Source: Vitrella brassicaformis CCMP3155
Lineage: Eukaryota; Protista; Chromerida
Assembly (NCBI GenBank): GCA_001179505.1
Contig: CDMY01000352.1
Location: 1-64,000 of the forward strand
Reading direction: 5' to 3'
Length of the DNA: 64,000 nt
Positions 7,783 through 51,934 of this stretch are shown here, piece after piece. The position numbers and the translations under genes are program-made. Under the pieces are notes generated by a model. The model was not told where the DNA came from. It ran no database searches and saw only the letters and a list, made by a program, of their open reading frames with translations. The stretch's first letter is position 1. Every line of letters begins with the position of its first letter.

Positions 7783-9421
7783 TCACTGCGTCATGCGGAC
7801 ACTCCTGACCGTCTTGGGCTTCCAGGTGCTGATGGTGGCGTTGGCCGCACTCACATGCGGGGCCGCCGCGCTGCACCGCCGCACCGTCTTGACCGTGTTG
7901 TACCCCTCAGACACCAACGAATGGCCCTCGCCACGGACGAACGAAGTGGACGCCTTTGCGGCGCCATCCTGGGGCTCGTCGGCAGGAGCCTCGTTCTGGA
8001 CGGGTGTGATGGGCTGCTCGTCCTCCATGGGCTCGCGCGGGGCGGAGATCAGCCCGGGAGCAGCGGCAAACGGCTCCGCAGCAGCACCAGAGGCGTCACA
8101 CAACTCGACGTCGACGGCCTGCAGACAGAAACCAGCAAGGGAGACACAGGCAGTGCAGTGCAATCCATTCACTTTTGCTGGGTGAAGTATGCAACACAGC
8201 TGTGTGTGGGTCGGCCTCACTCATCCCCCCACCTGTGCAGAGCCGTCGCTGGCCTCGTCAGCAATGCCCTCCACCTCACCCACCATAGCCGCACCGTCGT
8301 CAACGGCATCATTGCCGTCGATGGCCATTGGCGTCGACTCACACACACCGCTGTCGTGCTGGGAGGGGGCGGGGAGGGGGGAGGGAGCACCAGCAGACAC
8401 GTGGAGCGCCGCAGCATCCGGCTGGTCGGCATGAGCCGCCACGATGGCACACGAACGGCCCTCGTCAGCACAACGATACACCTAAAGACAGACACACAGA
8501 CCCAAGTACCAACAGAACACACACGTGCGCCCACCATATGCTAATCTCGTGTGTGGAGTCGGTCGGCTTCACTCGTTCCCTCACCTGTGCAGAGCCGTCG
8601 TCAACCTCGTCAACAATACCCTCTACAACATCTATGGTCCCCAAGCCATCGCCACCCTCCCCACCACACCCACCCTCGCCAGCAGCCCTGCTACCCTCCT
8701 GCACCACCCCTCGGCGGCTCGTGTCGTGCTGTGTCGTCAGGCGGGGGGCGGGGGAGGGGGACACACGCACTGCCGACGACTGACGGTGCGAGGCTGACTT
8801 GTCCGCACCCCCCGCTGCACGCCCCTTGTCGCCCACACGTGTGCCCTTCGTCACGTTGGCGCGGGTGGGCAGCTTGGCCGGCGGAGCCTTGCGGGCGACT
8901 GAACACAGTCGAGCACCGCCGCCGCCGAGCTTGGGGTTCTTCTGCAACATCTCCCGATACCTCCTCAGATCCTCCTCCTTAGCCCTCTGGTGTGCCCTGG
9001 CCTTGGCCGCCGCCCTCTCCCTCTGGCGCACAGCCGCTGCCGCCATATGCGGATTGACGTCAGGTCGACCACTGGGCGGCTTGCTGGCGATGCATGCACC
9101 GCTGCCGAGTCCTGCAGGCCGCTGAGGACGGCACTGGTGGCCACTGCCCTGATGCTGCGCCTTGCTGCTGTTGCCGGGGGGTCCATTGCGTGGGAAATAG
9201 ATGCCGCAGCCCATGTAGCTTGCGCGCCCCGAAAGTCCATAGTCCGCCGCGAGACCGTTCTTCTTCACCGCCGCCGGCGGCATAGTCGTCCGAATACGAC
9301 GCGAAACGACGAGAGAACTTATCAAACGCTGGTAACTGTTCTGTTGCTGCCTCCTCTTGCCTCGGCACTACTTTTTCTCCTCGTTTTCTCTCCAACACAG
9401 GTGCGAGCTTCATAGCTCGCA
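7783..9421 (-). pseudogene. Low-complexity Ala/Gly/Arg-rich hypothetical gene, copy A (probably degenerate)
   Basis: Exon-like segments (AAAVRQRERAAAKARAHQRAKEEDLRRYREMLQKNPK; GNDAVDDGAAMVGEVEGIADE; AVDVELCDASGAAAEP) are separated by GT-AG introns and conserved in copy B. The 5' frames differ between copies. Confidence 0.45.
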
Positions 9422-9588
9422 TTGATCGCGGGCAGCAGCCAACACACCTTGAGCAAGGTGAGGGCACGGTTCGCGCGAGGGGGTCAGTGCGATACACTCG
9501 TGGAAGATTGGTGAAAGATCCCGTCGTTTTGGCTGCGGTTGTGTCCCTCCCGGCCTGCAGAACTCAAACCCTCCGCGTCGCGAGCGAG

Positions 9589-15228: not shown

Positions 15229-16862
15229 TTGGCGGACACCGCAGCCACTTGTCTTTGCGTTGCACTTGCTGTGTGTGTGTGTTAGCGAGTGAGTGTGTCG
15301 GCGTGGATTTGGTGGCCGTCTCGGGTGTCAGTCGGTGGTGCAGGAGGCAATGACCTCGCGAGAGGTCCACCCGATCGCTGCTCATCGGCACATTCGACAC
15401 AAACCAAGAGAGAGACTTCATGTGTGTGATGACTGAGAGCGCATGCACAAAGGTCGTTACCCCTTTTTCGTTCGTCTCACACTCTCTGTCCTCTTGTCGC
15501 CCGCAGGTAGGTAGGTAAGCGGCTGTCATGCGATGATGCGATGCGTGCTCCCGTGTTGGTTCATGTGGATGAGGTGAGTATCCAGGTAGGTGGTTTGTGT
15601 GTCTGAGCTTGTCGTGTGTCCGTGTTTGTGTGTGTGTGTGGGTGGGTGGGTAGTATGTATGTAATCGTCCGTGCTGTGCCGGGCTAATTGTTGACAAACA
15701 GGTGGACGGATTCTGATTTGGTTTAGTTGTCGATAGGTTGTCGACAGACCACATTCAGCATCATGAGGCAGTTGCCAAGATTCTCTTGGTTGGTGTGGAT
15801 CGTGTACGTTTGCCTTTTTGTGTGCCTTGCGCGTGGAAAGGTCGATATGGTTGATGCAGTGCATTCACGCAGAGGACGTACGTGTCAGTCAGTTATGCGC
15901 ACAGCGTTGCTGTCTTCAGCAAGAGACAGCTGCAGAGAATGAAAGTGTCAAGTGTCCTGACTTGACTGTTGAGACAGTGTCACACCACAGGCCCGCCCTT
16001 TCCTCATCCGCCTCCCGAATGTCAGCAAAGCCACGGACTTACAACACCATACACACACACACACACATCTCACACACATCTCACACACGTCACACACCGA
16101 TGAACACGCGTATCGGGATCTGGCTCATTGTGAGATGCTCTGTGTGTGCGGCGGCACAAGCTGCAAATTGGTCATGGGCAGAAACGGGCAGATGATGGGC
16201 GGGCGAGTGGGCGTGGCCACCATGCGGGCCGGGCCGCCAACCCAAATCGGACAAAAGATGCGAAAGATGCGGAGTGGGCACACACGATATCAGTTGTGCG
16301 ACGGCACAAGACAAGCTGCCGATAGAACAGCGGCTGATGGGATGGGCAGTGGTGGTGTCGCCGGAGGCTGAAAAAATGCTGCCGACGACAAAAACCGGCG
16401 GAGAGAGCAGCAGTGCTTCTGCCGCAGCAGGGAAAAGCTTCGTGTCGCGGCAGCAAGCGGCAGCAGGAGAAAGGTCTCTAAACCAGGAACACAAAAATAT
16501 GTGCTTTTGGCGGATGCGTGTGTGGGTGTGTGCGACGGGCCGCCAACCAAAACCGCGGGACCAGGAAGCAAGTCGAATGAACCGTATGTATCGTGGACCA
16601 AAAATATCATTAATACGCAGTCAGTCAGTCAGTCAGTAGTAAGTCGACATGGATGGATTTGATCCACACGACACGGGCATGGGCATGGCATGGCGTTACG
16701 CTCACGCCTCTCCACGCCTCTCATGCGCCGCATCCATGCATCTGTCGTCTCTCTATCCACAAGTAAGTCCATCAATCCACGTTCCACCATCCTCTAATAT
16801 GCATCCCTCTCACCGCCACCACTCGGGTCCGTCCCAAACGCACGACCGTGCTCCTCGGCGAG

Positions 16863-18900
16863 TCACTCGACCAGCTGTGCGAGTCCGTTGCACTCCTTGA
16901 CGGCCTTGGTGATGGCATGGTCGAGCTTGCGCTGGGTGGGGGGCTCGACGGGGTAGATGCGCTTGGAGTGGTGGGTGCGGCCCCACCGGTCGGTGACGTG
17001 CACCTTGAACACACGGAGACGGCGGGAATAGCGGATGCCAAGACCTGCACTGCACATACAACAATGAAGGCACACGAGAGAGAAGGTGCCGATGGGCATA
17101 TCTCTCTCTGCTTGTCTGCTAGACGGTGTGCAGGACGGACATACCTGAGTGAATGGTGAGCCAGGTCACGTCTGAGTGTCGGCACTCGTCGATGCGGCAG
17201 GCGGCCTCGAGGAAGAGGGCATTGTCGTCGAGGCGTTTGTCGCGGTCGTCGGGCACGAAGAACCTCTCTCTGCAATTCCTCGTCAAGACGCCGCGCGTCG
17301 AAGTCGGGGCTCCATGGGGGGATGGGAAGAGGTGGGATGACGGTGTTGTCGGCAACCAGAGGGTGGGCATGTGTGTGCGGGTGGTCGAGACGATCGTCAC
17401 ACACATCGCCTGAGCCATCCCTGATGGACGGGATACGGCCGATGCGGCCTTCCCCCGCCCATCTGGACGGGATACGGCCGATGCGGCCTTCCCCCGCCCA
17501 TCGTGGGCTGGCTCGGACGACTGACATGGCCCACCTGCCAAGGCACACACACGAGACACACACGTGAGCCATTGCCTGGTGCCTCCAGTGCTCCCTCACG
17601 TACCTTCTGAAGGTTGCCCCGTATCAACCCGTCGCGGCCCCAGTGGCTTGATGAGCATGGCCGCCTCGTGGAGCACCGCAGATTGGCAGCCGTCTCCTTC
17701 AGTGGCCTGTTGCTGCCGGCCTTGGGAGAAGAACCGGTGAGTGGTCGGCCTTCTCACAGTACGACCACCTGCAGCACCCACACAACAGACACCATGAGAC
17801 GAGAGCCAGCATTCACCCATGTGTGTGTCGGCTGTGCAGTGCATATCCCAGCAAGACTGTCTCTGCTGCCCACCTGAGCTGCTCTCCCTCCTTGATGGTT
17901 TTGACGGGCGTGATGGCATGGCACAGCAGTAGTCCCCTGCACGCTATTCGCCACCTCGTCCGGCAAATACAGGTGTCTGGGCACCCACACCCTCACGCAG
18001 TTGGCCCTGGGCACCCACTCGGGCGCACTGGCGTCGATGGTGCCGTGGTTGATTGACACTGCAGGCAGCCAGATGCGAGCAGATCCTGTCGCCGAACAGC
18101 ACCGGGTTGGCCCCCGCCCTCGCCCCGGCGGCTTTGTCCTGCTCCTCCTGGCCGAATGTGGGCTTGTGTGACGGCTTGCTGGAGCCGTCGCGGTGTCCGG
18201 GCCCGTTCCACACGAGGCTGAGGTGTCCCAGCCAGTCGAGGTTGGCGATCTCGGCGCTGCATGGGATGGACATCCTGAAGCACTTGTCCCGCTCGGCCTT
18301 GAGGTCCGACTCGAGCTGGATCTTGCCCCCATAGGGCAGCAGGAGGCCCTGGAGCATCCTGCCGCGGATGTCCTCGGTGTAGTGGGCCGAGCTGCAGTTG
18401 GGGACGGGCCAGCCCAGGAGGTCCCGCCGCGCGACGGTCTTCTTCTCGTTGCCTTGGACGGTGTGAGGGGGTGTGAGGGGGGTAGGGCCGGGTGCCCGGC
18501 TCCAGCTGCCAGATGTGGCCGTGCCGTGCATGCGCTGGTAGGTCCAGTTGAAGATCTGCTCGTCGGCCTCGAGACGCACGGCGCGGTAGGACGGCACCAG
18601 GCAGCGGTCCAGCAGGAAGGAGAGGGACAGGTAGGCCTCGGCCTGGGTGCGCAGCAAAATGGTCGACTTGAACAGGTAGGTCATGGTCCTCATCCAAACC
18701 TATGTATGCAAGAGCCACACACCGAAGGGAAAGAAGGTGCATGTGATGTGTGAGCTGAGGTCTCTCTCCCTGTGTGTGTGTGTGTGTGTGGTTGCTTTGC
18801 TTACCGACCGACGGGTATCATTTCATCGTCGACCTCTACGTTGACCTGGTTCTCCCCTCCCGCCTCTTAACCTCAGCTGGAACCGGTGCGTGTGGCGCCG
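16863..18900 (-). pseudogene. Frameshifted multi-exon gene of unknown family, copy B
   Basis: Paralog of 4944-6899, with 4-, 4-, 5- and 10-nt tandem duplications and a further frameshift near 18080. Confidence 0.6.
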
Positions 18901-19782
18901 AAATGGAATTAGTCAAGTATGCAGCTAGCTAAGCAGGCCGGGCACCGCTGTCCTCTTACCCACACACGCGGCCCCGGCACTAAAACTTATCTGCCGCCAC
19001 ACACGCTGCCCTCCCGCCCCACCCCACCCCGAGACACACACACCCCACCCCACCCCACCCCACCCCACAAGCACAACACGACACGGTGCGAACAACAAGC
19101 ATGACATAATCATGACACAGATCGGAGAATTCACGGCAATAAATCACAGTAAACGCACCCATTCCTGCAGCCATACCGCTATGTATCGTGGGACAAATAC
19201 ACGCAATGCAACGGTAGGTAATACAGCCAGACTAAGGGCAAATCGCACGACAAACACACGCGCATAAATGAATGACATCGGCAAAGAAAGAGGCACAACC
19301 ACACACACACACACACAAAGAAAGAAAGAAAGAAACGCACGCACAACAATGAGGGTCCGTGCGACAGCTATCTATGTGGACGCACGCTCCTCTGGTCAGA
19401 CTGGACACCATCAAATTGTGGGTGCGGTGTGTGTGTTTACTCTACAGAGAGAGGTGTGGGAGTGCTGTGTGAGCTCTCCTCTCTTTCTCCTTCGCCCGCT
19501 CTATCTCTCCAACGGGTCTGTATGGCTGTCTGTCTCCCTATCCGGTAAGTATCAGCCCACGAAGGCAGTGAGGGAGCAAGGCAGGCAGTATCTATTGTCC
19601 GTCTATCTGTGTGTGCGGGGGGAGGCAGGCAGGTACATACAGTACAGCCAGACAGACAACCAGTAGTAAGGCAGCCACTCACATACGTGTGTATGTGTAT
19701 CTATCCCGCCACCCATCCATCCATCCATCCATATCATGTCTGTCACCTTCCCATCACCCTCCCCCCCGGCACACACAGCCAC

Positions 19783-21423
19783 TCACTGGGTCGTCCGCAC
19801 ACTCCTGACCGTCTTGGGCTTCCACTTGCTGATGGTGGCGTTGGCCGCACTCACATACGCCAATGCCGCGGTGCACCGCCGCACCGTCTTGACCATGTTG
19901 TACCCCTCACACACCAACGAGTGGCCGTCGCCACGGACGAACGAAGTGGACGCCACAGCGGCGCAATCCTGGGGCTCGTCGGCAGAGGCCTCGTTCTGGC
20001 TGGGTGTGATGGGCTGCTCGTCCTCCTTGGACTCGCGCGGGGCGGAGATCAGCGAGGGAGCAGCGGCACACGGCTCTGCAGCGGCACCAGAGGCGTCACA
20101 AAGCTCGACGTCGACGACCTGCAGACAGAAACCAGCGAGAGAGACACAGGCAGTGCAATCCACTCACTTTGCTGAGTGAAGTGTGAACACAAGGCAACCG
20201 CACCCACCCATCATCAATCCATCCCGGTGTTGTGTTATCATGTGTGTGGGTCGGCCTCGCTCATTCCCTCACCTGTGCAGAGCCGTCGTGATCCTCGTCA
20301 GCGATGCCCTCCACCTCACCCACCATGGCCACACCATCGTCAACGGCATCATTGCTGTCGACCGCCATTGGCGTCGACTCACACACACCGTTGTTGTGCT
20401 GGGAGGGGGCGGGGAGGGGGGAGGGAGCACCAACAGACACGTGGAGCGCCGCGGCATCCGGCTGGTCGGCATGAGCGGCCACGATGGCACACGAACGGCC
20501 CTCGTCAACACAACGGTACATCTGAAGACATACAGACAGACACACCCAAAGAACAACACAACACACACGTGCACCCACCACATGCTAATCTCGTGTGCGG
20601 GTCGGCCTCACTCGTTCCCTTACCTGTGCAGCGCCGTCGTCAACCTCGTCAACAATACCCACTACGACATCGACATCTATGGTCCCCAACCCATTGCCAC
20701 CATCCCCACCACATCCACCCTCGCCAGCAGCCCTGCTACCCTCCCGCACCACCCCTTTGCGGCTCGTGTCGTACTGTGTCGTCAGGCGGGGGGCGGGGGA
20801 CGGGGACGGGGACACACGCACTGCCGACGACTGACGGTGCGAGGCTGACTTGTCCGCACCCCCCGCTGCACGCCCCTTGTCGCCCACACGTGTGCCCTTC
20901 GTCACGTTGGCGCGGGTGGGCGGCTTGGCCGGCGGGGCCTTGCGGGCGACTGGACACAGTCGAGCTCCGCCGCCGCCGAGTTTGGGGTTCTTCTGCAACA
21001 TCTCCCGATATCTCCTTCGATCCTCCTCCTTTGCCCTCTCGTGTGCCCTCGCCTTGGCCGCCGCCCTCTCCCTCTGACGCACAGCCGCTGCCGTTACATG
21101 GGGATTGACGTCAGGTCGACCACTGGGCGGCTTGCTGGCGATGCATGCACCGCTGCCAAGTCCTGCAGGCCGCTGAGGACGGCACTGGTGGCCACTGCCG
21201 TGATGCTGCGCCTTGCTGCTGTTGCCGGGGGGTCCTGTGCGTGGGAAATACGCTGTAACAGTCCATAGTCCGCCGCGAGACCGTTCTTCTTCACCGCCGG
21301 TGGCGGGCATAGTGGCGGATACGACGCGAAACGACGAGAGAACTTATCAAACGCTGGCAACTGTTCTATTGCTGCCTGCTGTTGCCTCGGCACTACTTTT
21401 TCTCCTCGTTTTCTCTCCAACAC
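19783..21423 (-). pseudogene. Low-complexity hypothetical gene, copy B (probably degenerate)
   Basis: Paralog of 7783-9421; frame changes near the 5' end differ from copy A. Confidence 0.45.
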
Positions 21424-21499
21424 AGGTGCGAGCTATGAAGCTCGCACGGGATCGCGGCCGAGGAGCCACACACCTTGAGCAGCGGGAGCAGCTGTCCAT

Positions 21500-25374: not shown

Positions 25375-25711
25375 CGCGGGGAGAGAAGGGATGCCGTAGT
25401 GGGGGCCAAATCGGTCTTGGGGGCACCCAGCCGCGACGCAGTATCTGTCCGACTGACGTGTACTGACGTGCTGTGGTCACACCGCCATCTGTCTTCCGTT
25501 TCTTCCCACCCAGACCACCATCTCCTCCCTCCCCCACCTGTTCTGTCGGGGCGAAACATGAGGTGGGAACAGGAGGTCGAAGATCTGCCGCTCGCTCTCG
25601 TCGCTGCTGAGTGAGGAGAGACCTGCCCGATAGCTGTGTGGATTGTGTCTGTTGGGCAGTGGAAGGAAACAAGGCTGGCCTCTGCGGGACGACTTAAGTG
25701 CTTCTGGAGGG

Positions 25712-25795
25712 TTTTGTCTCACTGCAAGGCTGGCCCTGTGAGTGCAAGGCTGGCCTTTTAGCTGGAGGGCTGGCCCTGTGGCTGCAGGGCCAGCT
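25712..25795. repeat. Imperfect ~20-bp tandem repeat with core GC(A/T)(A/G)GGCTGGCC
   Basis: About 4 units here and about 6 units in the paralogous spacer at ~30635-30750. Confidence 0.7.
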
Positions 25796-27122
25796 TTGCG
25801 CACAAGTCGCTTGCATTGCATTTTCTGACGTGGATTCACCGAGGCGCCTTCAGGTAGCTTGAAGGCATTGATGGTCACCGGCGTCGATTGGATGAGCAGA
25901 AGTGCTGCCGGAAAATGTGCGTGTCTCTCTTGCCATGCTTAATTTGACGTGAATCTCTCGGGGCCTGGCTTCCGTTCTCCATTCCATCGTGTATCCGTGT
26001 GTGTCTCAACCTCAAAACACATGTATCAGAGAAGCAGAGGCCGTCGCAAAGGTACGAGTCACGAAACCACACCATAACTGAATACATCCGATCCAAATCA
26101 TGGAACGCAGCAGCCAAATTAACGCCGACACAAACATAACCATGGCCAACCCACCAATGTCACATCTTGGCTTGCAAGAGAGAGACGAAAACGGTGGATG
26201 TCGTGCGAATGAATTTGGGTCTCAGAGGGGTGGGGCGACGGACCGCCTTCTTGTGACGGCCTGCCCTCCCGCTGACTCCCATGTGTTTCTTACATGGGTG
26301 TGTGTACTGTATATGTATCTGTATCTGTATGTGGGAAGGCAGACAGAGCCAACAAACGAGTGACCGCTCGAGAGCGATTGCCACATGTGATGCTGCTCTG
26401 CTGCCTCGCCTCTTCTCTACCGCACTGCACTGCACTGTGGCGACGCTCGTGGCTTGTATGATCACAGACCACTTGGCCGCTCACAGGATGCCTGACAGCA
26501 GCAGAGACACATAGAGAGAGACGTATCAGATTGGTCTGTATGCGTGCCCTCACTGTGTGTCGGGACGTTGGTGTGTATGTATGCGTCTATGTCGATGGTT
26601 GCGCATGAAGCAGTCATCGATTGATCGATCATCCATTCATTGCAAGTTCGCATTGCATACACACACGCGTCTGCGTTTGTGTGTGTGTCTATTGGGTACT
26701 CATCTGCTACTCAGTGACAAGAAAGTATGCATGGAGCGCTACAGGTTGCTCTATCGCTGGTGCTTGGCTGGCTGGCTAGAGGGAAAATCGCCAGTATCGA
26801 TCGATGTGGTTGGTGGTGAGCTCTCTCTCTGACACACCCACCCACACGAACACGAAGAACATGAACATGTAACTGCGGTGACGGCATTCAAACGCCGATT
26901 CAAAGCACAGACAGCTGAGGCTGGTCGCCTCGCATGCGTACGTATATGTATGTATATACGTATATGTATGCAGACGTATGCAAGTGTGCAAGTAGGTATG
27001 CAAGTATGTATGTGGCGACATGCATTCATGCATCCCTCTTTCCGCGTGTGTACGCATACCATGACCAGGTCCTTGCCTGGGGGATGGTGTGTTGATGAGC
27101 TGAGTTGCGTCGATGAAGAGAA

Positions 27123-30100
27123 TTAGTAGCTGGGTGGAAAGCCGTCGAAGTCGTCACTGAACAGACACGCAACGATGAATGATGGATCACCGATCGTCAT
27201 TGTGTCGTGCATGCAAGGATTGACCTGCGTGGGGGTGCGCCGCGTCCGCGTCCGCCTTGCCGCCCTTGCCGCCCTTGGGGGCCTTCTTGGCCGCTTTGCC
27301 CTTCTTGTCCTTGCCGCCCTTCTTCTCCCCGGCTGTATCCGACAACGAGCACGTGAGACTGGTCGGCTGTGGCAGCACTTTATTGAGAGCCTCCAGCACA
27401 ACACTGCACACCACACACACACACGCACGGAGGGAGGGCGAAAGACAAAGAAACAAACATGCAATCCATGCCGTGCATAAGAGAGACATGAGGTGCGTCC
27501 CCGGGCTTACGTGCACAGCTCTTCAAAGCCTGTCTCTGCCTCAAATGTGACAATGAGAGTCTTGACGAGCGTCTCAACCGCCTCTGCGGAGAGTTTCTCG
27601 AGCAGCATGTCTTCAGGCAGCTTCAGTAGGTCGACAAGCAGCTCCTCCGCATCCTTGAGGCCGAGCACCTTGAAGAGCTCCTCAGCGAAGCTATCGAGGG
27701 CAATGCTCTTGGGAAGGTCGAGGATTGAGAAGACTGCGCACATCCAGACACAGACAAGACGGGCAGGCACACACGACATCCATCCGTGCGTCCACGCTTC
27801 CAATCGTCACGTATTTGTGGAGTACGTACCCAGAACTTCTGCCTCATAGGTCTTGTTTGCGGCGATGAGACAGTCCACATAATCCTCGACGGTCTTGTTA
27901 GCGATCAGCTCCGGAGCGTCCAGAAAGTCGCACATCGTTGCCATCTCTCCTCGGTTTTGTCGGCGACGTCTGTAGGGACAGAAGGCCGGGTAGCCGTAAT
28001 AGTCGCTACAGCAGCAGTAGGGGTAGGAGTAGTACGTGGTGTAGTAGATATAATCGTAATTGCCGCATAGGTAGCTACAGGTGCTGGCAGTATATTGTTC
28101 TGTGCTGCCGTCCAGAACATCTGTCGCGGAATCCGCAAGATCCGCCGCTTCTGTGTCGTTCAGGGTCGTATTTAGAACATCCGTCACGCAATCCTCAACA
28201 TCCGCCGTAAGTTGTTCTTTCTTGGGGGGTTGGTCTTTGGCGGCCATTTTGGAGAGCTCCTTGCCCTTCTTCTTCGCAACTTCAGCAATGACGTGTGTGA
28301 TGATTGCCTTGCCGTCAAGCTGGCACACATACACACACAGGTGACCGCAACAGACAGGCAATGATGAACCAGAGAGTGAGTGAGCATCCAATGAATGCTC
28401 GTGAACTGAGTGAGCACCGCGGCGGTGGTCACCTTGGTGGTCATGACGCTCTTGTCGCCCTTTCCGCGAGCCAAGCTGATGACGGCTTGCAGCGCCTTGC
28501 GGTCCAACCCACTTATGAGATCACTGCATCACACACACACACACACACACAAATCAGATGTGAGACCTGTTGAGCATGTGCGCCTCGCACTCACGGGATG
28601 GCTTTGTCGAGGCCCTTGTCATTCTTGAATGCGGCTACAAACCCTTCCAACATGGCAGCCGCCACCGATGGCGACTCGAACGTCCTGCCCGCGATCAGGT
28701 CTTTCGAAGCGGCCAGGCCGCGGCGACCGAAGATTGCTGACGACCAACACAGCAACCAACAACCAAGCACCACAGACACACAGGACAGCTGACGTCTGTG
28801 TGTGCGTGTGTGAGTCGTGAATGGCTACAACTGAGGATGTCGTCGGATGTTGTCGGACACGCCCAAACAAAGGCCTCCGCCACATCCACTGCGAGACATG
28901 CGTACATGTGATAATGCAGGCTCCCATGTCAACACACTCAGCCATCTCAGAACTCACGTTCTTCTTCCTGCGAGAGGCCAGCGAGGCATGTCTTGCTGAA
29001 TGCCTGGAGCTGAGCGGTGGTCGGTGGGTCAGACGCCAAAATAGCCTTGATCTCTGCAGAGGTGTCGCAGGCGTCGACCAGCGGAATATCATCGTCAGCC
29101 TTGACATTGCTGGCGTCCAGTCGCGAGATGACGCCATCTACAGTGCACACGCCTCCTCGGTTGCCTTGCCATGCTTGCCCTTTTTCTTGCGCTTCTCCAC
29201 GCCAGCCTTGGGCTTCTCTCCCTTGAGCTTGGCCATCGCCTTCTTGGCTGCGTCAGCAAAGTACGCCGCCACAGGCCTACCCTCAACCTTGAACGAGAGA
29301 AGGGATGAGTCACCCTTGCCGGCAGCCGACCCGCCGAATGTCTTCTCCAGCACGTCAAGGAGCATTCTCGGCTCCAGGCTCTCCAGGATCTTGGTGAGCT
29401 CCTTGCCAGCGCCCGGTGTGTCGGCAAACTGCTTGGCGTACTTGAGCAGGAAGGGGACGGCGAGCTCGGGGTGGTTCTCGGGCTTGAAGAGGTCGCTGTC
29501 GAAGAAGAGTCCGACCAGCTTGGTCGCCTCAGAAAGCCCCATGTCCTCCAGGATGAAAGTCAGCGCCTCCAAGTACTTAGGCAAGTTGACGAAAACAGTG
29601 ACTGAGTGTGACAGTAAGGAAACCAATCAGGCAGTAACATAGCTGTCTATGGGCTCTGGCGGCGCGTACCGATGCCCTCCAGGAATTGGTCTGGCGTATG
29701 GACCAAGTCCTTGAGGACCTTCGTGATGATCGGCGCTATCCGTTCACCGTTCTTCTCGGTGGGACATACCATCCACACGACACACACGGACACAGACACA
29801 GGCACAGACAGAACAAGCGAACATCATACACGGAACGGAAAAATTCCCAGCCACAGTCGTGTTTGTATTCCAGCAGCTGCCCCAACGTACTACAGCTGAC
29901 ACGTCAAGCTCGGAAACGGCGTCGACGATTCCATCGATGACGTCCGCTGGCACATCAGTCTGCTCCTTCTTGGCGCCTTCTGCATACATATCACGGCATG
30001 ACACAGCACGAAGAAAGTGAATCCAGTACTCGTCGAGCGGTGTTTGTGGCGTCCTTCACCTGTTTGCGGTGTGAGGAATGTGCCGGGCTGCTGCGGCGGG

Positions 30101-30159
30101 GCGGCCGACGCAGAGAGGATGAGGGCCGCCAGGGCGGCTACCGCTACATTCCCCCTCAT
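27123..30159 (-). CDS. Secreted modular acidic protein, short paralog (one apparent frameshift at ~29148)
   Basis: Signal peptide MRGNVAVAALAALILSASA; multiple exons; acidic modules separated by K/R-rich linkers; own last exon DDFDGFPPSY*. KATEEAC is followed by TAG at 29138-29140, while CTVDGVISRL continues in another frame. Confidence 0.65.
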
Positions 30160-30279
30160 TTGGGCCGTATACTACGCGGTAGGAGATAAACAAGGCAGGC
30201 TTTTTAAGCGGTGGCTTAGCACAGCGTTCAATTAGCCAACGGCCGATCTTTGTAAATTTGGCGTCGGGAGCTCTTGCTG

Positions 30280-30470
30280 TGTGCTCCGTTCGGTGCTGCT
30301 GGTGACCGCCGGCCACGCGGCAATCGCGGCCGACCCCGATGCGGTGAGAAGGGAGGGAGCTCCAGGAGGGAGAGAGAGAGGGCCAGACAGGGAGAGCCGC
30401 ACATGCCGAATCACCCACCCGCCACACTGCCACAACAGCTGCTATCACACACACACTTACACACATACAC
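30280..30470 (+). pseudogene. Truncated PEBP remnant
   Basis: Matches 38531-38578, then jumps straight to GACCCCGATGCG|GTGAGA (~38755), an internal deletion of ~170 nt. The start codon is lost and the remnant ends at the duplication junction. Confidence 0.8.
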
Positions 30471-31589
30471 AAAGAACTGATCGCCTCTCCACACCGGAGT
30501 AAGAGGTCGAAGGTCTGCCGCTCCCTCTCGTCGCTGCTGAGTGAGGAGAGATCTGCCCGGTAGCTGTTGGGCGGAAGGACACACGGCTGGCCTCTGCGGG
30601 ACGACTTAAGTGCTTCTAGATGGTTTTGACTCATTGCAAGGCTGGCCCTGAGTGCAAGGCTGGCCTTTCAGCTGGAGGGCTGGCCCTGTGGCTGCAGGGC
30701 TGGTTCTGCAGCTACAAGCTGGCCTTCTGACTGCAGGGCTGGCCCCAGGGGCAGACATGGCAGCCTTCGGCCGCAAAATGTCCGTGTCTCTCTTGCCATG
30801 CTTAATTTGACATGAACCTCTCTCAGGGGCCTGGCTTCCGTTCTCCATTCCATCGTGTATCCGTGTGTGTCTCAACCTCAAAACACATGTATCAGAAGAG
30901 CAGAGGCCGTCGCAAACCACATCATAAGTGAATGCATCCGATCCAAATCATGGATCGCAGCAGCCAAATTAACGCCGACATGGCCAACCCACCAATGTCA
31001 CATCTTGGCTTGCAAGAGAGAGACGAAAACGGCGGATGTCGTGCGCATAAATTTGGGTCTCAGAGGGGTGGGGCGACGGACCGCCTTAATTGTTTTTGAC
31101 GGCCTGCCCTCCCGCCGACTCCCATGTGTTTCTTACATGGGTGTGTGTACTGTATATGTATCTGTATGTGTCTGTGGGGAGGCAGACAGAGCCAACAAAC
31201 GAGTGACCGCTCGAGAGCGATTGCCACATGTGATGCTGCTCTGCTGCCTTGCCTCTCCTCTACCGCACTGCACTGTACTGTACTGTACCCAGCTTCAAGC
31301 GCACGTGTGTGTGGAGTGGAGCAAGAAAGACAAAAAGAGAGAGACACTACCGCCTCACTACCGCATGAATGAATGGCATTAGGGCAGCATGTATGGACGT
31401 ACAGAAAATTGCCCGGCCGGCTGCATGGCCATGCAGCCATGCACATGTGCGTACATGTACGTATCGAAAAACGCCGACCATATCACTGACCTATGGCAGC
31501 CCCTTGTCTTGCCGCCCTCCCTGCTCGATGCCGACCGAGTTGACGATAACCACCATACACCAACCACCATCTTCCAAGGATGCGGCCCG

Positions 31590-34500
31590 TTATAGGAAGG
31601 CATCTTTGAACTGTTGGATCAGCTCTGCATTTGCCTCCAGGGCCTCGAGTTGCGCTTCGACAAGACCTGCACAAGAGACGGAGCCACAGGCAGGCAGAAG
31701 ACAGACAGACCGGGGTGGGCACATACACATACACACATACGTACCTGCAAAGTCTTCGGCGGTGCAATTCGGTGGCAACGTGTCGCGGAAGGTGCCAACG
31801 AGAGTTTGAAACGCATCCTCGTTGCCCATGAAATCCACGAGAAGGCCAGCTGCACGCGACGGACACCACACTTTTCACACATTCAGCTAGCTGGCTGTGA
31901 TCGGCTGTGTCTGTCTGGCTCGTCCATCGATTCAGCTTACGGACACGCACGTGCTCACTTACCGAGTAGGGCAGCGAGTTCCTCGCAGTCCTGTTCCTTG
32001 ACGGCCTTGCTGCCCTCCTTCTGCTTGCCAGCCGTCTTGCCGGGTATCACGGGAGTGGCATCGGTAGGGCAGGTGAAAGTCATGGTCTTGAGTGCAGCAG
32101 TGAAAGCGTCGACCTGGTCGGGAAGTAGCTGCTGTTTCACTTTCTCTAGCGCTGCGTCTGTCACCACACATGAGTCAGACGAGACGAGCAGCTTGCATCG
32201 AGTTATATACTGTGTGACAACCTCGTGTATTGTACCCATGAAGCCATCGAGGCCTCCTGAAGATTGGCAGATGATCAATCCGTAGATACCCAGGAAGAAG
32301 TCAATGGCTGCCCCATCACCACCATTGGCGCCCGTGAATATGGAAACTGAAGACAGCGAGAGAGAGACGCCGATGGAAATGCCGTTGTCTTCGCCTTCCT
32401 GCCTTGCGAGAATCGCTCTCTGCTCATCCATCCATGTGTGCATGCTTACTCATGATGACAATCAGCACAGTAAAACTAATAGTGAACTGTTCCTTGACGG
32501 CCTTGCTGCCCTCCTTCTGCTTGCCAGCCGTCTTGCCGGGTATCACGGCAGTGGCATCGGTAGGGCAGGTGAAAGTCATATCCTTGAGTGCAGCAGTGAA
32601 GTCGTCGACCTGGTTGGGGCTGGTGGAGATCATCTTCGCTTCGACAGAATCTAGATGTCATCACACACGCATCAGACAAGTGGGTGTGTGACACATACTG
32701 TCTGATGCGCCGCGTCGCGTACCGAAGAAGCCAGACAGGCCTCCTGAGGATTGGCAGATGAACAATCCGTAAATACTCAGGAAAAAGTCAATGGCCTTGC
32801 CATCACCGTCACCGCCCGTGAATATGGAAACTGAACACAGCCAGAGAGAGACACCCATCGGAAATGCTCTTGTCTTCGCCTGCCTTGCGAGAATCGCTCT
32901 CTGCTCATCTATCCATGTGCGCGCGCTTACTCATGAGCACAATGAGCACTGAAATAGTCTGTTCCTGGACGGCCTTGTCGCCCTGCTTCTCCTCGCTGCC
33001 TGCCGCGTCGGAGGCCTGCCGCAAGGCGTCAATCAGCTCGTCAATCTTCGCGTCCGTCAGGCCAAGCTTGCCGGCCTGGATGCGCAGCTCCTCAATGATG
33101 TCAGCTGCACAGCGAGACGGCCAATCGTGGGTGCATACGTGTCCTCTTGTCATCAGCTGTCCTCCCTCCCTCCCTCCCTCCCTCCCATGTGTGTGTGTGT
33201 GTGTCGGTCTCGATGTAGGTGTACCAACCAATAGAGAGGTCACTGAGCTTGAAGAGCGCCGTCGCAGTGTCGATGCAGCTGGCGTCTTGACAGATGGACA
33301 GGAACAACCGGACTGAGACATCACACACACACATGGCAGCACAGACACAAGAGCAGATGTCAGTCAGTCAGTCTGCCTGTCACCCTGCCGCGCTGTGTGT
33401 GGTATGCGTGGATGCGTACCGAACTGTTCAGGCTTGAGAAAACCGGGGATGGTGACAATAGGGCCCTGCTCCTTGCCCCTCTTGCTGCCCTTGTCCTTCT
33501 GCTGCTTGCCCTTGTTGTCTTTGCACACAACGGGGTTGTCGGCGTCGATCCCTTCAAGCGCGTACTGCACCGACACAGTGAACTGGACACTGTCGACAGC
33601 CTCTGGACGCACACCCAACACAGGCGGGGGGAAGGGGAACGAACGACGAATGGGTTCTTCCAGTCAGCTCTCTCTCTCTCTCTCTGGATGTGTGTGTGTG
33701 TGTGTGCCGGTGTGTGTGACGACACCAGCTTACTTACCGAGGAGTTTGTCGAGGCTCTCGGGAGGCACCGTCGAGCTGACAAACTTGGCCACCTCACTGA
33801 AGCATTTGTCGCGAATCCTCACTTGGTTGCAGGGGCCCTCAAGGTATGCTTCTGAGAGGACGGACGGCACCACCGACAGGCAGATAGAGACACATGGGAC
33901 GGATGGATCTGTTCGGTGCGTGAACCAAGTGCGTACTTATGACTCTTGCGATCTCGTCCACCTTGGCCGCAAAGTCAGCAGGGTGACTGGTGCCTGAAGC
34001 GGTCGTGGTATTAGTCACGTCTCCAGTCGTCTTCATGACAGACACGTCAGATACTTCAGTCTTATTGGTTGGCTGAGATACTTCTCTCTTGTCGATTGTC
34101 GTATCCTCCTTCTTGGCGGTGCTGCCCTGTGACCGCCGGCAGATGACTTGGTCTGAGCAGGCGAGCGTCGAGAAATCCAGCAGGGCCTGACTCACAGGCT
34201 CCAGCTGTGTCCACGCATTGAACTTGGCTGCGAACTCTGGAGCACGGGTGGTGCCCTCGTCGGCGTCCACCGCCTTGACAGTACACCACACATCAGCTGC
34301 AGCCACCCACGCACGAACGCACGCACCCACCAAGATATGTCGAGTCGTGTGCGTGCTGTTTTGGCGTGTGCCTCACTGGCAAGTGACTGAGCGGATGCCT
34401 GGTTGGCCCCCAGGCCGAGTTGCCTGAACGCCGAGTTAACCAAAGCCTGTCTCAGGTCTTCACCAGCGGCATCGACGGCCTTAATAGCCTTGTACGAGAA

Positions 34501-37500
34501 AGCTGCATACACACACACACACACACAGACACACACATCCATGTGGTGCACATGAATGTTGCATGTCCGTCCGTCTGTCTGTCTGTCTGTCTGAATGTGT
34601 GTGAGTACCGAGCTGATCCACAAGCAGGGGGTTGTAGTCTTTGAGGTTGACGAGGCACAAAAGAACATAGCTGTCGACGTCGGCCGACTGGACCGGTAGG
34701 TCTCCGCACGCCTCGGGGGCGTCGATCTCTTTGGTGCGAGCGCACCGGGCCCCTCCATCCCTCCCCGTGGCTGTGCTGGCAGCCGTCTCAGCAGCCTCTA
34801 CGATCTTTTCTATCTGATCCTCACGTAGACCGGCTTTAGTCGCCAAATCCCTGATGGACAGGACAGCAGGACGATGGGTGGTCATGACCGATGAATGTAT
34901 CCATGTGTCTGTGTGTATGGCCGCTTACGTAACCACAGCTATATCGAACGTGAACAGGTCGCCGAGCTCGAGGGCGAAGACTTCAAGTAGTCTCTCTTCG
35001 ACATCGTTCTCGAAGACCTCCTCCGCAATGACCGCCTCCAAAAGCTTCAAAGTCGTTTCAAAGTCGTCAAGCGCGCCACCGAACAGGTTCTCAAGGAAGA
35101 GGGCCTCCTCCTGTGGGTCGAGTTTCTCGAGAATGTCCTTGAGCAGCTCAATCTCATCAGCGGAGGTTTCCAGGAACTCCATAGCAATACCTACACAGAA
35201 GAGTTAGAGACCAAAGATCCGTGTGCGAATGTCTTGCGCGTGCCAGTCGCCTGCGCACCGAACAGCTTGGCATCCTCAGCAACGTTGTTCGTGATGCTAA
35301 GGAAGCAGCCGACTTCTGTGATTGAGCAGGGGAAGTCCATCTCCTTGCGCGCCTTTCCGCCCTTGGTGGCCTTCTTGGCCGGTTTGCCCTTCTTGTCCTT
35401 GCCGCCCTTCTTCTCCCCGGCTGTATCCGACAACGAGCACGTGAGACTCGTCGGCTGTGGCAGCACTTTATTGAGAGCCCCCAGCACAACACTGCACACA
35501 CACACACACACACACGTACGGAGGGAGGGCGAAAGAAAAAGAAACAAACATACAATCCATGCCGTGCATTAAAGAGACATGACGTGCGTCCCCGGGCTTA
35601 CGTGCACAGCTCTTCAAAGCCTGTCTCTGCCTCAAATGTGACGATGAGAGTCTCGACGAGCGTCTCAACCGCCTCCGCGGAGAGTTTCTCGAGCAGCATG
35701 TCTTCAGGCAGCTTCAGTAGGTCGACAAGCAGCTCCTCCGCATCCTTGAGGCCGAGCACCTTGAAGAGCTCCTCAGCGAAGCTATCGAGGGCAATGCTCT
35801 TGGGAAGGTCGAGGATTGAGAGGACTGCGCACACATCCAGACACAGACACGACGGACAGGCACACATGACATCCATCCGTGCGTCCACGCTTCCAATCGT
35901 CACGTGTTTGTGGAGTACGTACCAAGAACTTCTGCCTCATAGGTTTTGTTTGCGGCGATGAGACAGTCCACATAATCCTCGACGGCCTTGTTAGCGATCA
36001 GCTCCGGAGCGTCCAGAAAGTCGCACATCGTTGCCATCGCCGTCCGGTTTCGTCGGCGGCGGCGGCGTTGTTGGGCCGCTTCGACGGCCTCCTCAAAATC
36101 TGCGACATCTGCGGCCGGAATAGACTCAAGAGAGCTCTGGACGGCAGCTGCATGCAAAAATCAATCCCATGGCCACTGCATTGTCCATCGTCCTCTGCCA
36201 TCTGTGTGTGGCGGGGTACTTACTGATAAATGGAGAATCGGCTCCGAAGTCGTTGACGACTTGGTTGACGAGCTCTTGCTGCTCTTCAGTGGGGCCGTCG
36301 ACAAGGTTGGGGTCATCCAGCACCACGAAAACCGCAGCTGCATAGACGGCCGACATCCAAGGCGACACATGCTGTTTGTGTTTGCTGTTGTTGTTTCACT
36401 CAGACGTACCAACGGCCGCCTCCTGGAAATCTAGGCTCGGCAGAGAATCGATGCAGGAAGCGTAGAAATCCTCCACATCTTCTGGGCTGCTCAGGGTCGT
36501 CCTTCCAGCCAGAACATCCTCCACGCATCCCTGTTCTTTCTTGGCGGGTTGGTCTTTGGCGGCCATTTTGGAGAGCTCCTTGCCCTTCTTCCTCGCAACT
36601 TCAGCAATGACGTGTGTGATGATTACCTTGCCGTCAAGCTGGCACACATACACACACAGGTGACCGCAACAGACAGGCAATGATGAACCAGAGAGTGAGT
36701 GAGCATCCCCTGTAATGCTGCAGTAAGAGCGTGATTTGAGTGAGCACCTTGGTGGTCAGGAGGACGCTCTTGTTGCCCTTTCGGCGAGCCATGCTGATGA
36801 CGGCTTGCAGCGCCTTGCGGTCCAACCCACTTATGAGATCACTGCATCACACACACACACACACACAGATATAAGACGCGTTGAGCATGTGCGCCTCGCA
36901 CTCACGGGATGGCTTTGTCGAGGCCCTTGTCATTCTTGAATGTGGCTACAAACCCTTCCAACATGGCAGCCGCCACCGATGGCGACTCGAACGTCCTGCC
37001 TGCGATCAGGTGTTTCGAAGCGGCCAGGCCACGGCGACCGAAGATTGCTGACGACCAACACAGCAACCAACAACCAAGCACCACAGACACACAGGACAGC
37101 TGACGTCTTTGTGTGCGTGTGTGTGTGTCGTGGATGGCTACCACTGACTAGTTGCAGGGCGAGCTCAGGGTCGAAAGCCGAAAAGGCGGCCACCAAACCT
37201 CCTAGGGAGACAATGGCACGGTAGCATAGGAGGAGAGATGCCAACAGTTGCCAAAAGAGTGCTTTCTCCGGGAACTGACCGATAATCGGTTGCAGCTCAG
37301 TCGCCGAGAGCTCATCGAGGCACTCTTCGACAAATTCGTCGACGTCAGGGAGCACAGCCGCCAAGTCGCAGCCCCAGTCGACTGGAAGACCCTCCAAATC
37401 ATCAATGAGCTCCTCCAGCGTCGATTCCTTGACCGCCTTGTCCTGCTTGCTCTTTTTCTTGCGCTTGTCTACGCCAGCTTTGGGCTGCTGTCCCTTGAGC

Positions 37501-38416
37501 TTAGCCATCGCCTTCTTGGCTGCGTCAGCAAAGTACGCCGCCACAGGCCTACCCTCAACTGTGAACGAGAGGAGGGATGAGTCACCCCTGCCAGCAGCCG
37601 ACCCGCCGAATGTCTTCTCCAGCACGTCAAGGAGCATTCTCGGCTCCAGGCTCTCCAGGATCTTGGTGAGCTTCTTGCCAGCGCCCGGTGTGTCGGCAAA
37701 CTGCTTGGTGTACTTGAGCAGGAAGGGGCCGGCGAGCTCGGGGTGGTTCTCGGGCTTGAACAGGTCGCTGTCGAAGAAGAGTCCGACCAGCTTGGTCGCC
37801 TCAGAAAGCCCCATGTCCTCCAGGATGAAAGGCAGCGCCTCCAAGTACTTAGGCAAGTTGACGAAAACAGTGACTGAGTGCAACAGTAAGGAAACCAATC
37901 AGGTCGAAACATAGCTGTCTATGGGCTCTGGCGGCGCGTACCGATGCCCTCCAGGAATTGGTCTGGCGTATGGACCAAGTCCTTGAGGACCTTCGTGATG
38001 ATCGGCGCTATCCGTTCACTGTTCTTCTCGGTGGGACACACCATCCACACGACACACACACACACACACACACAGAACAAGCGAACATCATACACAAAAT
38101 TTCCCAGCCACGGTCGTGTTTGTATTCCAGCAGCTGCCCCAACGTACTACAGCTGACACGTCAAGCTCGGAAACGGCGTCGACGATTCCATCGATGACGT
38201 CCGCTGGCACATCAGTCTGCTCCTTCTTGGCGCCTTCTGCATACATATCACGGCATGACACAGCACAAAGAAAGTGATTCCAGTACTTGTCGAGCGGTGT
38301 TTGTGGCGTCCTTCACCTGTTTTCGGCGTGAGGAAGGTGCCGGGCTGCTGCGGCGGGGCGGCCGACGCAGAGAGGATGAGGGCCACCAGGGCGGCTACCG
38401 CTACATTCCCCCTCAT
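31590..38416 (-). CDS. Large secreted modular acidic protein (putative polyprotein), long paralog, ~20 exons
   Basis: Signal peptide MRGNVAVAALVALILSASA; successive GC3-rich exons encode acidic, helix-like, Cys-containing modules with recurring K..KEQ-type linkers; ends LIQQFKDAFL*. Continuity over every intron was not verified, so it could be two genes. Confidence 0.62.
31985..32975. repeat. Internal ~490-bp tandem duplication of one module plus linker
   Basis: IFTG..G...AIDFFL.IYGL.ICQSSGGL and TFTCPTDAT.VIPGKTAGKQKEGSKAVKEQ each occur twice, about 490 bp apart, with the introns duplicated too. Confidence 0.9.
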
Positions 38417-38520
38417 CTGGGCCGTATACAGGGAAATATCAGGGCAGGCTTTGAGCGGCGGTTTAGCACAGCGTTCAATTAGCCAACGGCCGTAAATCTG
38501 TCGTATCGGGTCGTTTTCTT

Positions 38521-39610
38521 ATGACGCGTTGTGTGCTCCGTTCGGTGCTGCTGGTTACCGCCGGCCACGCGGCAATCGCGTTCGGGGCGGGGGCGGCCGT
38601 GTCAGTCCGAGGCGATGTGCGTGCGGACGGCCCTGCGGCCGCCCCAGCGCGGTTCACGCAGGACTTTGACCTCAGCTCGGACACGAGCAGCCTGGAGGTG
38701 CGGACAAATGTGGAGCTGGATGATGACGCCACACAGGCGACCCTCATTATGGTGGACCCCGATGCGGTGAGAAGGGAGGGAGCGCCAGGGAGGGAGAGAG
38801 GGCCAGACAGGGAGAGCTTCACATTGCCACGTCGTCACTGCTGCAATCCTTTGTGTTTCTTTCGCGTGTGCGTGAGTCAGCCTAACGGTTGTCAGGGCAA
38901 TGCCAAAGCCAAGAAGCAAAACAAGGTAAGGTCCTGCCTTCAACGCAGACAGCGGCACGTGCTCTGTGTGATTGTGGCCGGCAGGACTACTTCCACTGGT
39001 GGGTGGCGAACCTAACAAAAGGAAAGTTCACACCCGAACAGGAGAAAGGTCAGCTCATACCCACCAAAACACACTCGCTGACTTTCGGTCCGCTTCGTGT
39101 GTGGCTGTCCAGCTTGTGAGGGTACCGTCGTGGCACTGGGTCCGAGCAAGAGCTGGTCGGGCTGCGAAATGCTGGAATTCGTCCCGCCCTCACCGCCCAA
39201 GGGCATGGTAACTAACACTCACTCAGGCAGCCGCCACGTACTAGAGGAAAAGGAGGAATGGACCGTTGCCGTCTGTCTGTCTGTCTCTCACACTACACAG
39301 CACCGTTACCAGATCTACATAGTGATGGGCGGCAAGAAGGCCGAGCTCCCTAATGCCCCCGAGGGACGCGCACAGAAGAAGGTACGTGATGTCACTGCTT
39401 AGCTTACTGACTGTTCTAAACGCCCACGTTGGCTTGTTTGTCGTTCAGAGCTTCTTCCAAGCCATAACCAAGTCTGCCGGGGTCGAAATGGCGCCACTGG
39501 CGACCTTTTTTGCGTGTGCTGACAGTTCTGAGCAGCTGTGCGAGACGGCAATGAGTGAGCAGGAACTGCCCAAGGGATGCGAGGTAGAGTCGGTACCTGG
39601 CATCAAATAG
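38521..39610 (+). CDS. Phosphatidylethanolamine-binding protein (PEBP/RKIP family) with N-terminal hydrophobic leader
   Basis: TLIMVDPDA|, DYFHWWVANL, FVPPSPPKG| and HRYQIYI are the PEBP signature motifs in the expected order. Confidence 0.88.
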
Positions 39611-40672: not shown

Positions 40673-42136
40673 TTAGTGGTATTTCTGTTTGGCGAGTGAG
40701 TAGAGGAGTGTGCCGCCGACAGCGATGGCCGAGCCGATGCCGCCCACGAGCGAGATGGGGTTGCGGAAGACTATCACCGACGCCAAGATGATCACCACAC
40801 GCTTCAGAGTGTTGGCCACAGCATGAGTCACCGCATTCAGTCTAAACACACACACATCCACCCAACACACGCCTTGATGTGACGACCGTGTGTGGGGGGG
40901 GAGGGGGTAGATTCTGACCTGCCGAGGGTGATGAATGCGACTTCGTTGTATGAGTAGTACCAGACGCCGGACAGCAGCGTGTACCAGGCAATGCTCTGCC
41001 AGGTGTTGCCGCTGTCGATGGCCGTCGCCTTTTCCCACTCGCCGCTGATCTCCTTGCCCTCGATCATCAGCGCCACCACTGTGCTCAGGAGCTGATACAC
41101 ACACACACACAGACACACACACACACACACACACACACATATGGGGGGGGTTCAACCATGGTGGTGTGTGTCGGTGTGAGCTTACCGTCGAGACGATCGT
41201 CAGGAGCGAGTACAGGTTCGCGGAGTCAAGGTTCTCACCGATCTCCTTGGTGTCCTTCTGAACCCTCTTCGCGAAAATGCCTACACGCACACAGAGAGAG
41301 AGAGAGCAAAGGGCTCTTCTCCGGGCCCCCTGCCCGCCCACCACACGAGTTCGTTCTCACTTCTGAGTGACGATCCCAGGTTGGAGACCATTGCGCCGGT
41401 GAACGAGAGCCAGGTGAAGGAGAGTTCCTTCATGGCCGCCACGGCCACGCCGCCCACCACGGGGACGAGCGCCAGGTAAGTGAGCGGGTGGAAGACCTCC
41501 TTGAGCATCACGCCCGCCAGCAAAGCCGTTATGGCCGGCTCGCCCGCCTTGACGATGTGCGTGAACGACACCGCACCAGCAGCTGGACAGACACCACACC
41601 ACACAACCACACATAGTTCAGTCACATCACATGGGACGCCTTCCTGTTGGTTCAGTCAGCGACCTGACCTACCCATTGACACGGCGGCGCCAGCGTGGAC
41701 GCCCAAGTGGAAGACGCCCTGTGGGGCGATTTTCTTCCAGAATGCGGGCCAGTTGTTGATGATGGGCATCTTGCGGCCGCCGGTGAGCCAGAGTGGCCAG
41801 AACCAGAGCCAGCCGATCCAGAGCTGGATGGTGGAGATGGTCCATGGCAGGTTGAGCATGTTGACGGCCTTCTTGTTGTGGATGTTGTACCAGGTGTTGA
41901 GGAAGTACCACAGAGCCACCAGACCCAATGTGATGAGCGTCTCCCTCATGTCGCTTGAGGCCGCCTTCTTCTCCTCCTGCGTCAATGAGTGAGAGAGGAC
42001 AGGACGACGGACGACATCGACAAGAGCGCATGATTGCCTGCCTGCCAGCCTGGCTGTGGCTGAGTGGCTGATGTATGTATACCTCCTTCTTCTCATTGTC
42101 CCTGAAGGTGCCGTACGCTGCGCCGCGGGTCGTCAT
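40673..42136 (-). CDS. Plastid triose-phosphate/phosphate translocator, leaderless APT1/oTPT type
   Basis: WYFLNTWYNIHNKKAVN, AVSFTHIVKAGEPAITA, ELSFTWLSFTGAMVSN, YYSYNEVAF and AVTHAVANTLKRVVIILASVIVFRNP; short N-terminus MTTRGAAYGTFRDNEKKE. Confidence 0.93.
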
Positions 42137-51634: not shown

Positions 51635-51934
51635 NNNNNNNNNNNNNNNNNNNNNNNNNNNNNNNNNNNNNNNNNNNNNNNNNNNNNNNNNNNNNNNNNN
51701 NNNNNNNNNNNNNNNNNNNNNNNNNNNNNNNNNNNNNNNNNNNNNNNNNNNNNNNNNNNNNNNNNNNNNNNNNNNNNNNNNNNNNNNNNNNNNNNNNNNN
51801 NNNNNNNNNNNNNNNNNNNNNNNNNNNNNNNNNNNNNNNNNNNNNNNNNNNNNNNNNNNNNNNNNNNNNNNNNNNNNNNNNNNNNNNNNNNNNNNNNNNN
51901 NNNNNNNNNNNNNNNNNNNNNNNNNNNNNNNNNN
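51635..51934. other. Assembly gap (300 N)
   Basis: Run of N in the sequence. Confidence 1.

Follow-up and report, generated by a model that had tools for sequence, protein, structure and literature searches.

How can two neighbouring genes be nearly identical over long blocks and then pass abruptly into different sequence just after their basic linkers? The question is raised by a locus of Vitrella brassicaformis CCMP3155 (assembly GCA_001179505.1, contig CDMY01000352.1, positions 1-64,000). This stretch of 64,000 nucleotides (nt) is the window, and coordinates are window positions. The locus consists of two tandem duplication units on the minus strand, of which unit A carries a short, remodelled gene copy and unit B a long, apparently intact one. 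An earlier note on this DNA, made from the sequence by itself, proposed that the linkers are boundaries for the exchange of module cassettes. The explanation that we favour is that the gene was duplicated recently, with a synonymous divergence (dS) of ~0.045, and that copy A was then structurally remodelled at linker DNA prone to recombination or breakage. On the evidence set out below, this explanation could about equally well hold or fail.

Unit A extends over 25573-30407 (BLASTN) and unit B over 30503-38828 (BLASTN and self-BLAST of the window). Repeat finding and BLASTN show that the two units have four collinear blocks in common on the minus strand. The collinear BLASTN segments are 25573-25790 of A with 30503-30700 of B, 25907-26438 with 30770-31281, 27255-27965 with 35343-36058, 28213-28834 with 36532-37147, and 29163-30328 with 37435-38580. 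With gap columns left out, and with introns and flanks included, block identity is 94.5-96.5%. The paralogs are thus near-identical as the earlier note described them, and our switch coordinates agree with its own within a few bases. A minisatellite of 20-nt period lies at the 3' end of both units (25722-25790 and 30635-30745).

All four blocks have diverged to a like extent (3.5-5.5%). Mismatches number 0-9 per 100 columns in every block and are evenly spread, with no rise near the switches. The blocks are therefore of one age and their borders are abrupt, indicating that structural events, not locally fast substitution, separate the two copies. In this respect the earlier note was right to see sharp replacement where ordinary divergence would not give it. 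In the common blocks, dS is 0.045, nonsynonymous divergence (dN) is 0.026, the Jukes-Cantor distance of introns is 0.054 and that of the flanks is 0.06-0.07; the introns are conserved as strongly as the synonymous sites. Pooled dN/dS is 0.57, which fits one constrained and one relaxed copy. Divided at the frame break of A described below, the ratio is 0.52 upstream and 0.65 downstream, from 43 substitutions only and with no outgroup.

Gene B (31590-38416, minus strand) is an inferred model of 23 exons that runs from the ATG at 38416 to the stop at 31592-31590. It was built from frame continuity and splice signals alone, with exons joined locally for the frame check; database searches and structure prediction used single exons, not joined proteins. 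Its 1403 codons are free of internal stops, its GT-AG introns are in frame, and each junction between coding stretches offers at least one frame-keeping GT-AG intron of 64-315 nt. The predicted product is acidic (isoelectric point 4.7), with 24 Cys residues and five strongly basic linkers. It reads as a protein of ~1400 residues, whose helical domain at the N-terminus precedes a series of short Cys-pair modules with flexible Lys/Arg-rich linkers between them. Only some of the modules of B are detectably related to each other by Smith-Waterman alignment and by a module profile. For exon 4, an AlphaFold single-sequence model shows helices throughout apart from a disordered linker, at low confidence (mean predicted local distance difference test score 58). 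A high-copy short repeat of ~50 nt, found at more than 40 places in the genome at 87-97% identity, lies at 33664-33718, inside an inferred intron of B.

Genes A and B begin at the same ATG (30159 in A, 38416 in B). The coding sequence opens with a signal-peptide-like N-terminus, and three short introns come next. By inspection, the N-terminus has a basic residue first, then ~13 hydrophobic residues and a cleavage motif of small residues. The product of gene B is predicted to be secreted, and it may be cut at its linkers.

No relatives of the gene were found. Pfam holds no family for the ten exon peptides tested, exon 4 of B has no match among 1.84 billion representative proteins, and a word-index protein search with exon 4 of B and the first module of A gives none either. 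Nor did the searches with exon 4 bring up any transcript-derived protein. JGI metagenome contigs contain no relatives of the gene, and an Atlas feature search stayed below the recognition threshold. In the databases searched, the gene is, as far as its sequence can tell, an orphan confined to this lineage and of no known family, in agreement with the earlier note, which had recognised none.

Between the blocks lie three segments in which A and B do not align. Each starts 0-45 nt past a purine-rich tract that encodes a Lys-rich linker, a purine-rich tract being defined as at least 80% purine in 30 nt. Gene A has exactly three such tracts, one ahead of each switch start at this distance. By our own arithmetic, the chance of this coincidence of three tracts with three switches is ~2e-4. 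On the minus strand, switch 1 begins directly against the DNA of linker 1 (29161-29209 in A, 37425-37475 in B), switch 2 begins 45 nt downstream of that of linker 2 (28257-28286 in A, 36576-36605 in B), and switch 3 begins ~25 nt downstream of that of linker 4 (27281-27340 in A, 35335-35428 in B). The observation of the earlier note that the switches start after basic linkers is thereby confirmed. Its further claim that linkers bound the switches is true of the starts and of the end of switch 2, which is an Arg-rich linker, but not of switch 1, which on its far side stops at a splice donor; switch 3 ends where a dispersed repeat has its natural terminus.

The linker DNA is of low complexity, mutually similar and purine-rich, and may for this reason be prone to slippage, breakage or ectopic pairing. 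We infer that it is the mutational cause of the coincidence between linkers and switches. A 15-mer that encodes K-A-V-K/Q-E(-Q) is present at four linkers of B, against 0.01 matches expected by chance. This recurrent linker ending is not a classic dibasic site. Within B, an internal tandem repeat (31991-32996, minus strand) has a period of ~490 nt, with one exon and one intron in each unit, and its last unit ends directly after a linker. Its units are ~87% identical in the intron and 95% identical in the 132 nt beside the linker, and ~90 nt around the acceptor and the start of the exon cannot be aligned. Synonymous divergence beside the linker is 0.067 compared with 0.13 in the intron, but the difference is not significant, and we do not claim gene conversion in these repeats.

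At switch 1, copy A has 328 nt (28835-29162, minus strand) and copy B 287 nt (37148-37434, minus strand). The segment of B is in frame and encodes a Cys-pair module, and an inferred intron of B (37202-37279) falls within it. The module is related to the second module of B (Smith-Waterman against shuffles, z 5.1). The segment of A is unique in the genome and has an open frame and a GTGAGT donor, but is out of frame with the upstream exon. BLASTP gives no alignment between the first modules of A and B, Smith-Waterman comparison gives z 0.09, and the best DNA match between them is 18 nt long (E ~0.1), at the second Cys motif. Against the profile of B modules, the first module of A matches weakly (p ~0.04-0.06) and the second at p ~0.02. 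A Cys motif and an intron position that seemed by eye to be shared by the two first modules were dropped, being without statistical support. What lies at the far border of switch 1, no more than six bases from it, is a conserved splice donor and not a linker.

The consequence of switch 1 for gene A is a broken frame. Part 1 of the gene (29138-30159, minus strand) has four exons with 245 codons in all, which cover the predicted signal peptide, the helical domain at the N-terminus and the first linker. The frame of exon 4 meets an in-frame TAG at 29140-29138, four codons past linker 1, a premature stop relative to the intact paralogue. Part 2 (27187-29150, minus strand) lies in the -1 frame relative to part 1 and has 476 open codons with splice phases like those of B, up to a stop at 27189-27187. 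Enumeration of GT/GC-AG pairs that could rescue the frame gave only very short or poorly signalled introns, and splice rescue was rejected because no well-signalled intron is among them. On the opposite strand, an open reading frame (ORF) of 273 codons that starts with ATG (28821-29642, plus strand) is antisense to exon 4 and switch 1 of A. Since the antisense frame over switch 1 is without stops, this ORF is probably a chance open frame in DNA rich in guanine and cytosine (GC).

At switch 2, the two copies have not lost all resemblance. Copy A has 247 nt (27966-28212, minus strand) in one open stretch, with a local duplication of 63 nt and TAC-rich sequence of low complexity. Copy B has 473 nt (36059-36531, minus strand), which hold what remains of a module and, in addition, one extra exon, two inferred introns and the Arg-rich linker. 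The first ~55 nt past the linker still align between A and B at 70% (z 7.4; E 4e-5). The description of the switched segments as unrelated in the earlier note therefore applies to switch 1, where we find no significant similarity, but not wholly to switch 2. Because this residual homology leads, in B, into two introns and an extra exon and, in A, into a duplication and TAC-rich filler, A looks like the simpler derived state, formed by deletion, local duplication and addition of low-complexity sequence. The sequence of A is open and in frame, so the version in A was probably still coding when it was formed.

At switch 3, BLASTN places the gap between the blocks at 26439-27254 in A and 31282-35342 in B (minus strand). 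The segment of B is 4061 nt long, absent from A and unique in the genome, and holds ~11 further exons, encoding modules and linkers, and the stop of B. In its place, A has a terminal piece, ~820 bp long, of a low-copy dispersed repeat (26435-27256, strand not assigned), so that A is truncated by repetitive DNA. The fragment supplies the last ~22 codons of A and its stop. It matches the repeat terminus end to end, and the repeat is present on at least five other contigs (C407, C509, C18, C701, C799 and others), at 79-88% identity in the genome search and 88-96% in BLASTN sub-blocks. All copies share the terminus on the 26436 side of A and extend from it for 100, ~300, ~820, ~2900 or >6300 nt, a pattern typical of truncated insertions, as these copies appear to be. 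The longer copies run more than 6 kilobases (kb) beyond the point that corresponds to the repeat/linker junction of A. Among the copies are C407:69443-75778, C509:812-3752, C18:3-3345 and C701:1-3450, several of them at contig ends. Pfam finds no domain in the ORFs of a long copy, with no transposase or reverse transcriptase, and no terminal inverted repeats are seen in the fragment in A. Judged by its sequence, switch 3 is plainly to be read as a repeat-associated truncation and not as a module swap. The earlier note had described it as A ending where B adds modules; the additional modules of B are real, but what A has there is a piece of a dispersed repeat.

If modules had been exchanged, their sources might be expected elsewhere in the genome, and the earlier note had called for a search for further paralogs with alternative modules at the same linkers. 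We searched the whole 72.7-Mb assembly (1064 contigs). Six-frame and DNA searches with the constant blocks find two copies only, those of this locus, and therefore no such paralogs. Peptide and DNA searches with the variable segments return self-matches only, each segment being unique. It follows from these two results that this assembly contains no donor cassettes.

The sequence of events that we propose would start with a young tandem duplication of a lineage-specific gene, the copies of which have since diverged neutrally by ~5%. Three structural mutations would then have occurred in A, each beginning at or just after a purine-rich tract that encodes a linker. In the first, 328 nt of unique sequence would have taken the place of the first module, shifting the frame and exposing the stop. 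In the second, the second module would have undergone deletion and local duplication and gained low-complexity filler. In the third, the distal 4 kb would have been lost, in the place of which a truncated copy of the dispersed repeat now lies. By parsimony, we infer that all three derived states are in A and not in B. This placement, together with the stop and the repeat fragment, suggests that copy A is a remodelled and probably decaying or truncated paralogue. Its product would have at most 245 residues, unless the frame break is an assembly error.

Several results weigh against this explanation. The segment of A at switch 2 is open and in frame (P ~0.03, from openness alone). That at switch 1 is coding-like as well, with the GC pattern at third codon positions, a consensus donor and an open frame (P ~0.10). 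Its 328 nt have no other place in the assembly and no match in protein databases that would give their source. All 476 codons of part 2 are open with splice phases like those of B, which is unexpected of random filler. In small counts, dN/dS is no different upstream and downstream of the break. The frame break itself could be a one-base assembly error. Finally, the direction of each change is assigned by parsimony between the two copies.

The alternative that survives best is that the switched segments are old. According to it, diverged modules, paralogous or once allelic, stand at fixed positions, and gene conversion, or recombination between diverged haplotypes, later made the constant blocks around them alike. 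The outcome would be a mosaic of conserved and variable blocks resembling the dimorphic blocks of merozoite surface protein 1 in malaria parasites. We consider this unlikely, while taking it seriously. It accounts for the abrupt borders, at which identity does not decay, and for the stretch of 70% identity beside blocks of 95% at switch 2. There, both versions are open and in frame and yet are two introns and an exon apart, suggesting long separate histories. The weak profile matches of the two modules of A and the 18-nt match at the second Cys motif are further signs of old homology, and the internal repeats of B display the same mosaic of conserved and unalignable parts. On the other hand, independent conversion events would not be expected to leave four blocks equally diverged, and the homogenised tract would need to cover 4.8 kb, intergenic flanks included. 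Conversion is not demonstrated even in the internal repeats of B, where the contrast in divergence falls short of significance. Nor do old forms explain why A has a stop at the junction, why switch 3 is a repeat-associated truncation, or why the first modules remain without alignment in BLASTP and without a signal in Smith-Waterman comparison.

The assembly might also have produced the pattern. Two haplotypes, or a collapsed and mis-resolved repeat, could have been placed in tandem, or a local misassembly could account for the frame break and the odd segments. Short-read assemblers have difficulty with tandem copies that are 95% identical, the same window has another duplication of comparable identity (~88-92%), and copies of the dispersed repeat are often at contig ends. 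We regard an artefact as improbable all the same: no N run interrupts 24-40 kb, the sequence continues unbroken from one unit into the other, and misassembly yields identical or chimeric sequence, not unique coding-like segments that are absent from the rest of the assembly.

With the same low probability, copy A is a functional gene, its frame break due to a sequencing error or bridged by a -1 shift at the lysine run. A would then be a neo-functionalised paralogue of reduced length that has gained a new tail and two novel modules. The frame of part 2 is exactly -1, the linker contains an A-rich run of lysine codons ahead of the stop, switch 2 keeps the frame, and part 2 keeps its 476 open codons with correct splice phases. 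Recoding by a -1 shift at the run is thus conceivable. However, no more than five A make up the run, and no well-signalled intron rescues the frame. Moreover, open frames are expected to persist at only ~5% divergence, and long chance ORFs are common in GC-rich DNA, the frame antisense to switch 1 being an example.

It is less probable again that the purine-rich linker tracts are true recombination joints for the replacement of entire Cys-pair modules in a secreted polyprotein, with working modules in A, an assembly error as the frame break, and donors in other haplotypes or in unassembled DNA. The least probable explanation is the one advanced by the earlier note, a dedicated system in which modules are copied from a cassette store and joined at linkers to diversify a secreted ligand or effector: although the switch starts coincide with linkers, the 15-mer common to several linkers could guide recombination and the predicted secreted protein is modular and an orphan, we hold it to be very improbable and do not uphold the claim, because the 72.7 Mb contain no store (two gene copies, each variable segment once), one supposed cassette is a fragment of a dispersed repeat, one switch breaks the frame, one retains residual homology and switch 1 stops, on its far side, at a splice donor.

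Silent-cassette gene-conversion systems, such as trypanosome VSG, Borrelia vlsE and Neisseria pilE/pilS, need an archive of silent donors. The locus resembles them in that segments bounded by conserved sequence are replaced in the gene of a surface or secreted protein, and differs from them in that this assembly holds no donor archive.

Merozoite surface protein 1 (MSP1) of Plasmodium is a mosaic of conserved and variable blocks (allelic dimorphism), of which intact alleles are maintained in populations. Like MSP1, the locus belongs to the apicomplexan-chromerid lineage and is predicted to encode a secreted or surface protein, and its near-identical blocks alternate with barely alignable or non-alignable blocks at fixed positions and with sharp borders. 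Conserved blocks alternating with positionally fixed diverged blocks, the mark of this type, are thus present. Unlike MSP1, to which there is no sequence relationship, the two forms are tandem copies in one genome, and they are not both intact: A has a stop and a tail made of a repeat fragment.

Focal diversification of the conotoxin type gives the same kind of pattern as the small secreted salivary gland protein families of the Hessian fly. In these families, paralogues are clustered and their non-coding and signal-peptide parts are more conserved than the mature coding parts (PMC2955719). Our locus likewise has clustered paralogues, predicted to be secreted, with the same contrast in conservation. 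In contrast to the Hessian fly families and to those of the conotoxin type, which have many members that differ by substitution under selection, it has two members whose differences are structural and include intron sequence.

Protease-processed repeat polyproteins include the Kex2-processed repeat proteins of fungi and the polyprotein allergens of nematodes. Gene B is like them in its predicted signal peptide, its small units and its basic linkers, and the linker, of the K-A-V-K-E-Q type, is the best-conserved part of the repeat. It is unlike them in that its units are mostly not recognisably alike and the motif is not a plain KR/RR; there is no sequence or Pfam relationship, and processing would be by analogy.

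If the explanation that we favour is correct, the locus is a worked example of a young tandem duplicate decaying through structural mutations seeded at low-complexity linker DNA, and a caution against taking such mosaics for designed module exchange. Gene B deserves attention in its own right as an orphan chromerid protein of ~1400 residues, predicted to be secreted, in which a basic linker motif recurs and is conserved better than any other feature. The motif makes processing into small acidic Cys-pair peptides, or a role in building a matrix, testable by proteomics. Should both sets of modules turn out to be polymorphic and to function, a free-living relative of the apicomplexans would have, in this locus, a counterpart of the block dimorphism of their surface antigens. 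Were the linkers true joints of replacement, it would represent a mechanism of module-level diversity in a free-living relative of apicomplexan parasites.

The surroundings of the locus have features of their own. A second segmental duplication of ~5.4 kb (4098-9455 and 15950-21481) has copies ~12 kb apart at 87-92% identity, and K-A-V-K-E is also encoded in its minus-strand ORFs, at 4974-4988 and at 16893-16907. Recent duplications seem to arise readily in this region, unless it is the assembly that tends to duplicate it. An Rfam search of 24-40 kb gave no match. The sole N run of the window, a scaffold gap, is at 51635-51934, within a low-GC patch (GC 0.48 at 50-52 kb). Upstream of the two units, the neighbouring gene is represented by an exon of a triose-phosphate/nucleotide-sugar transporter (40676-41344, minus strand; Pfam TPT, E 3e-19).

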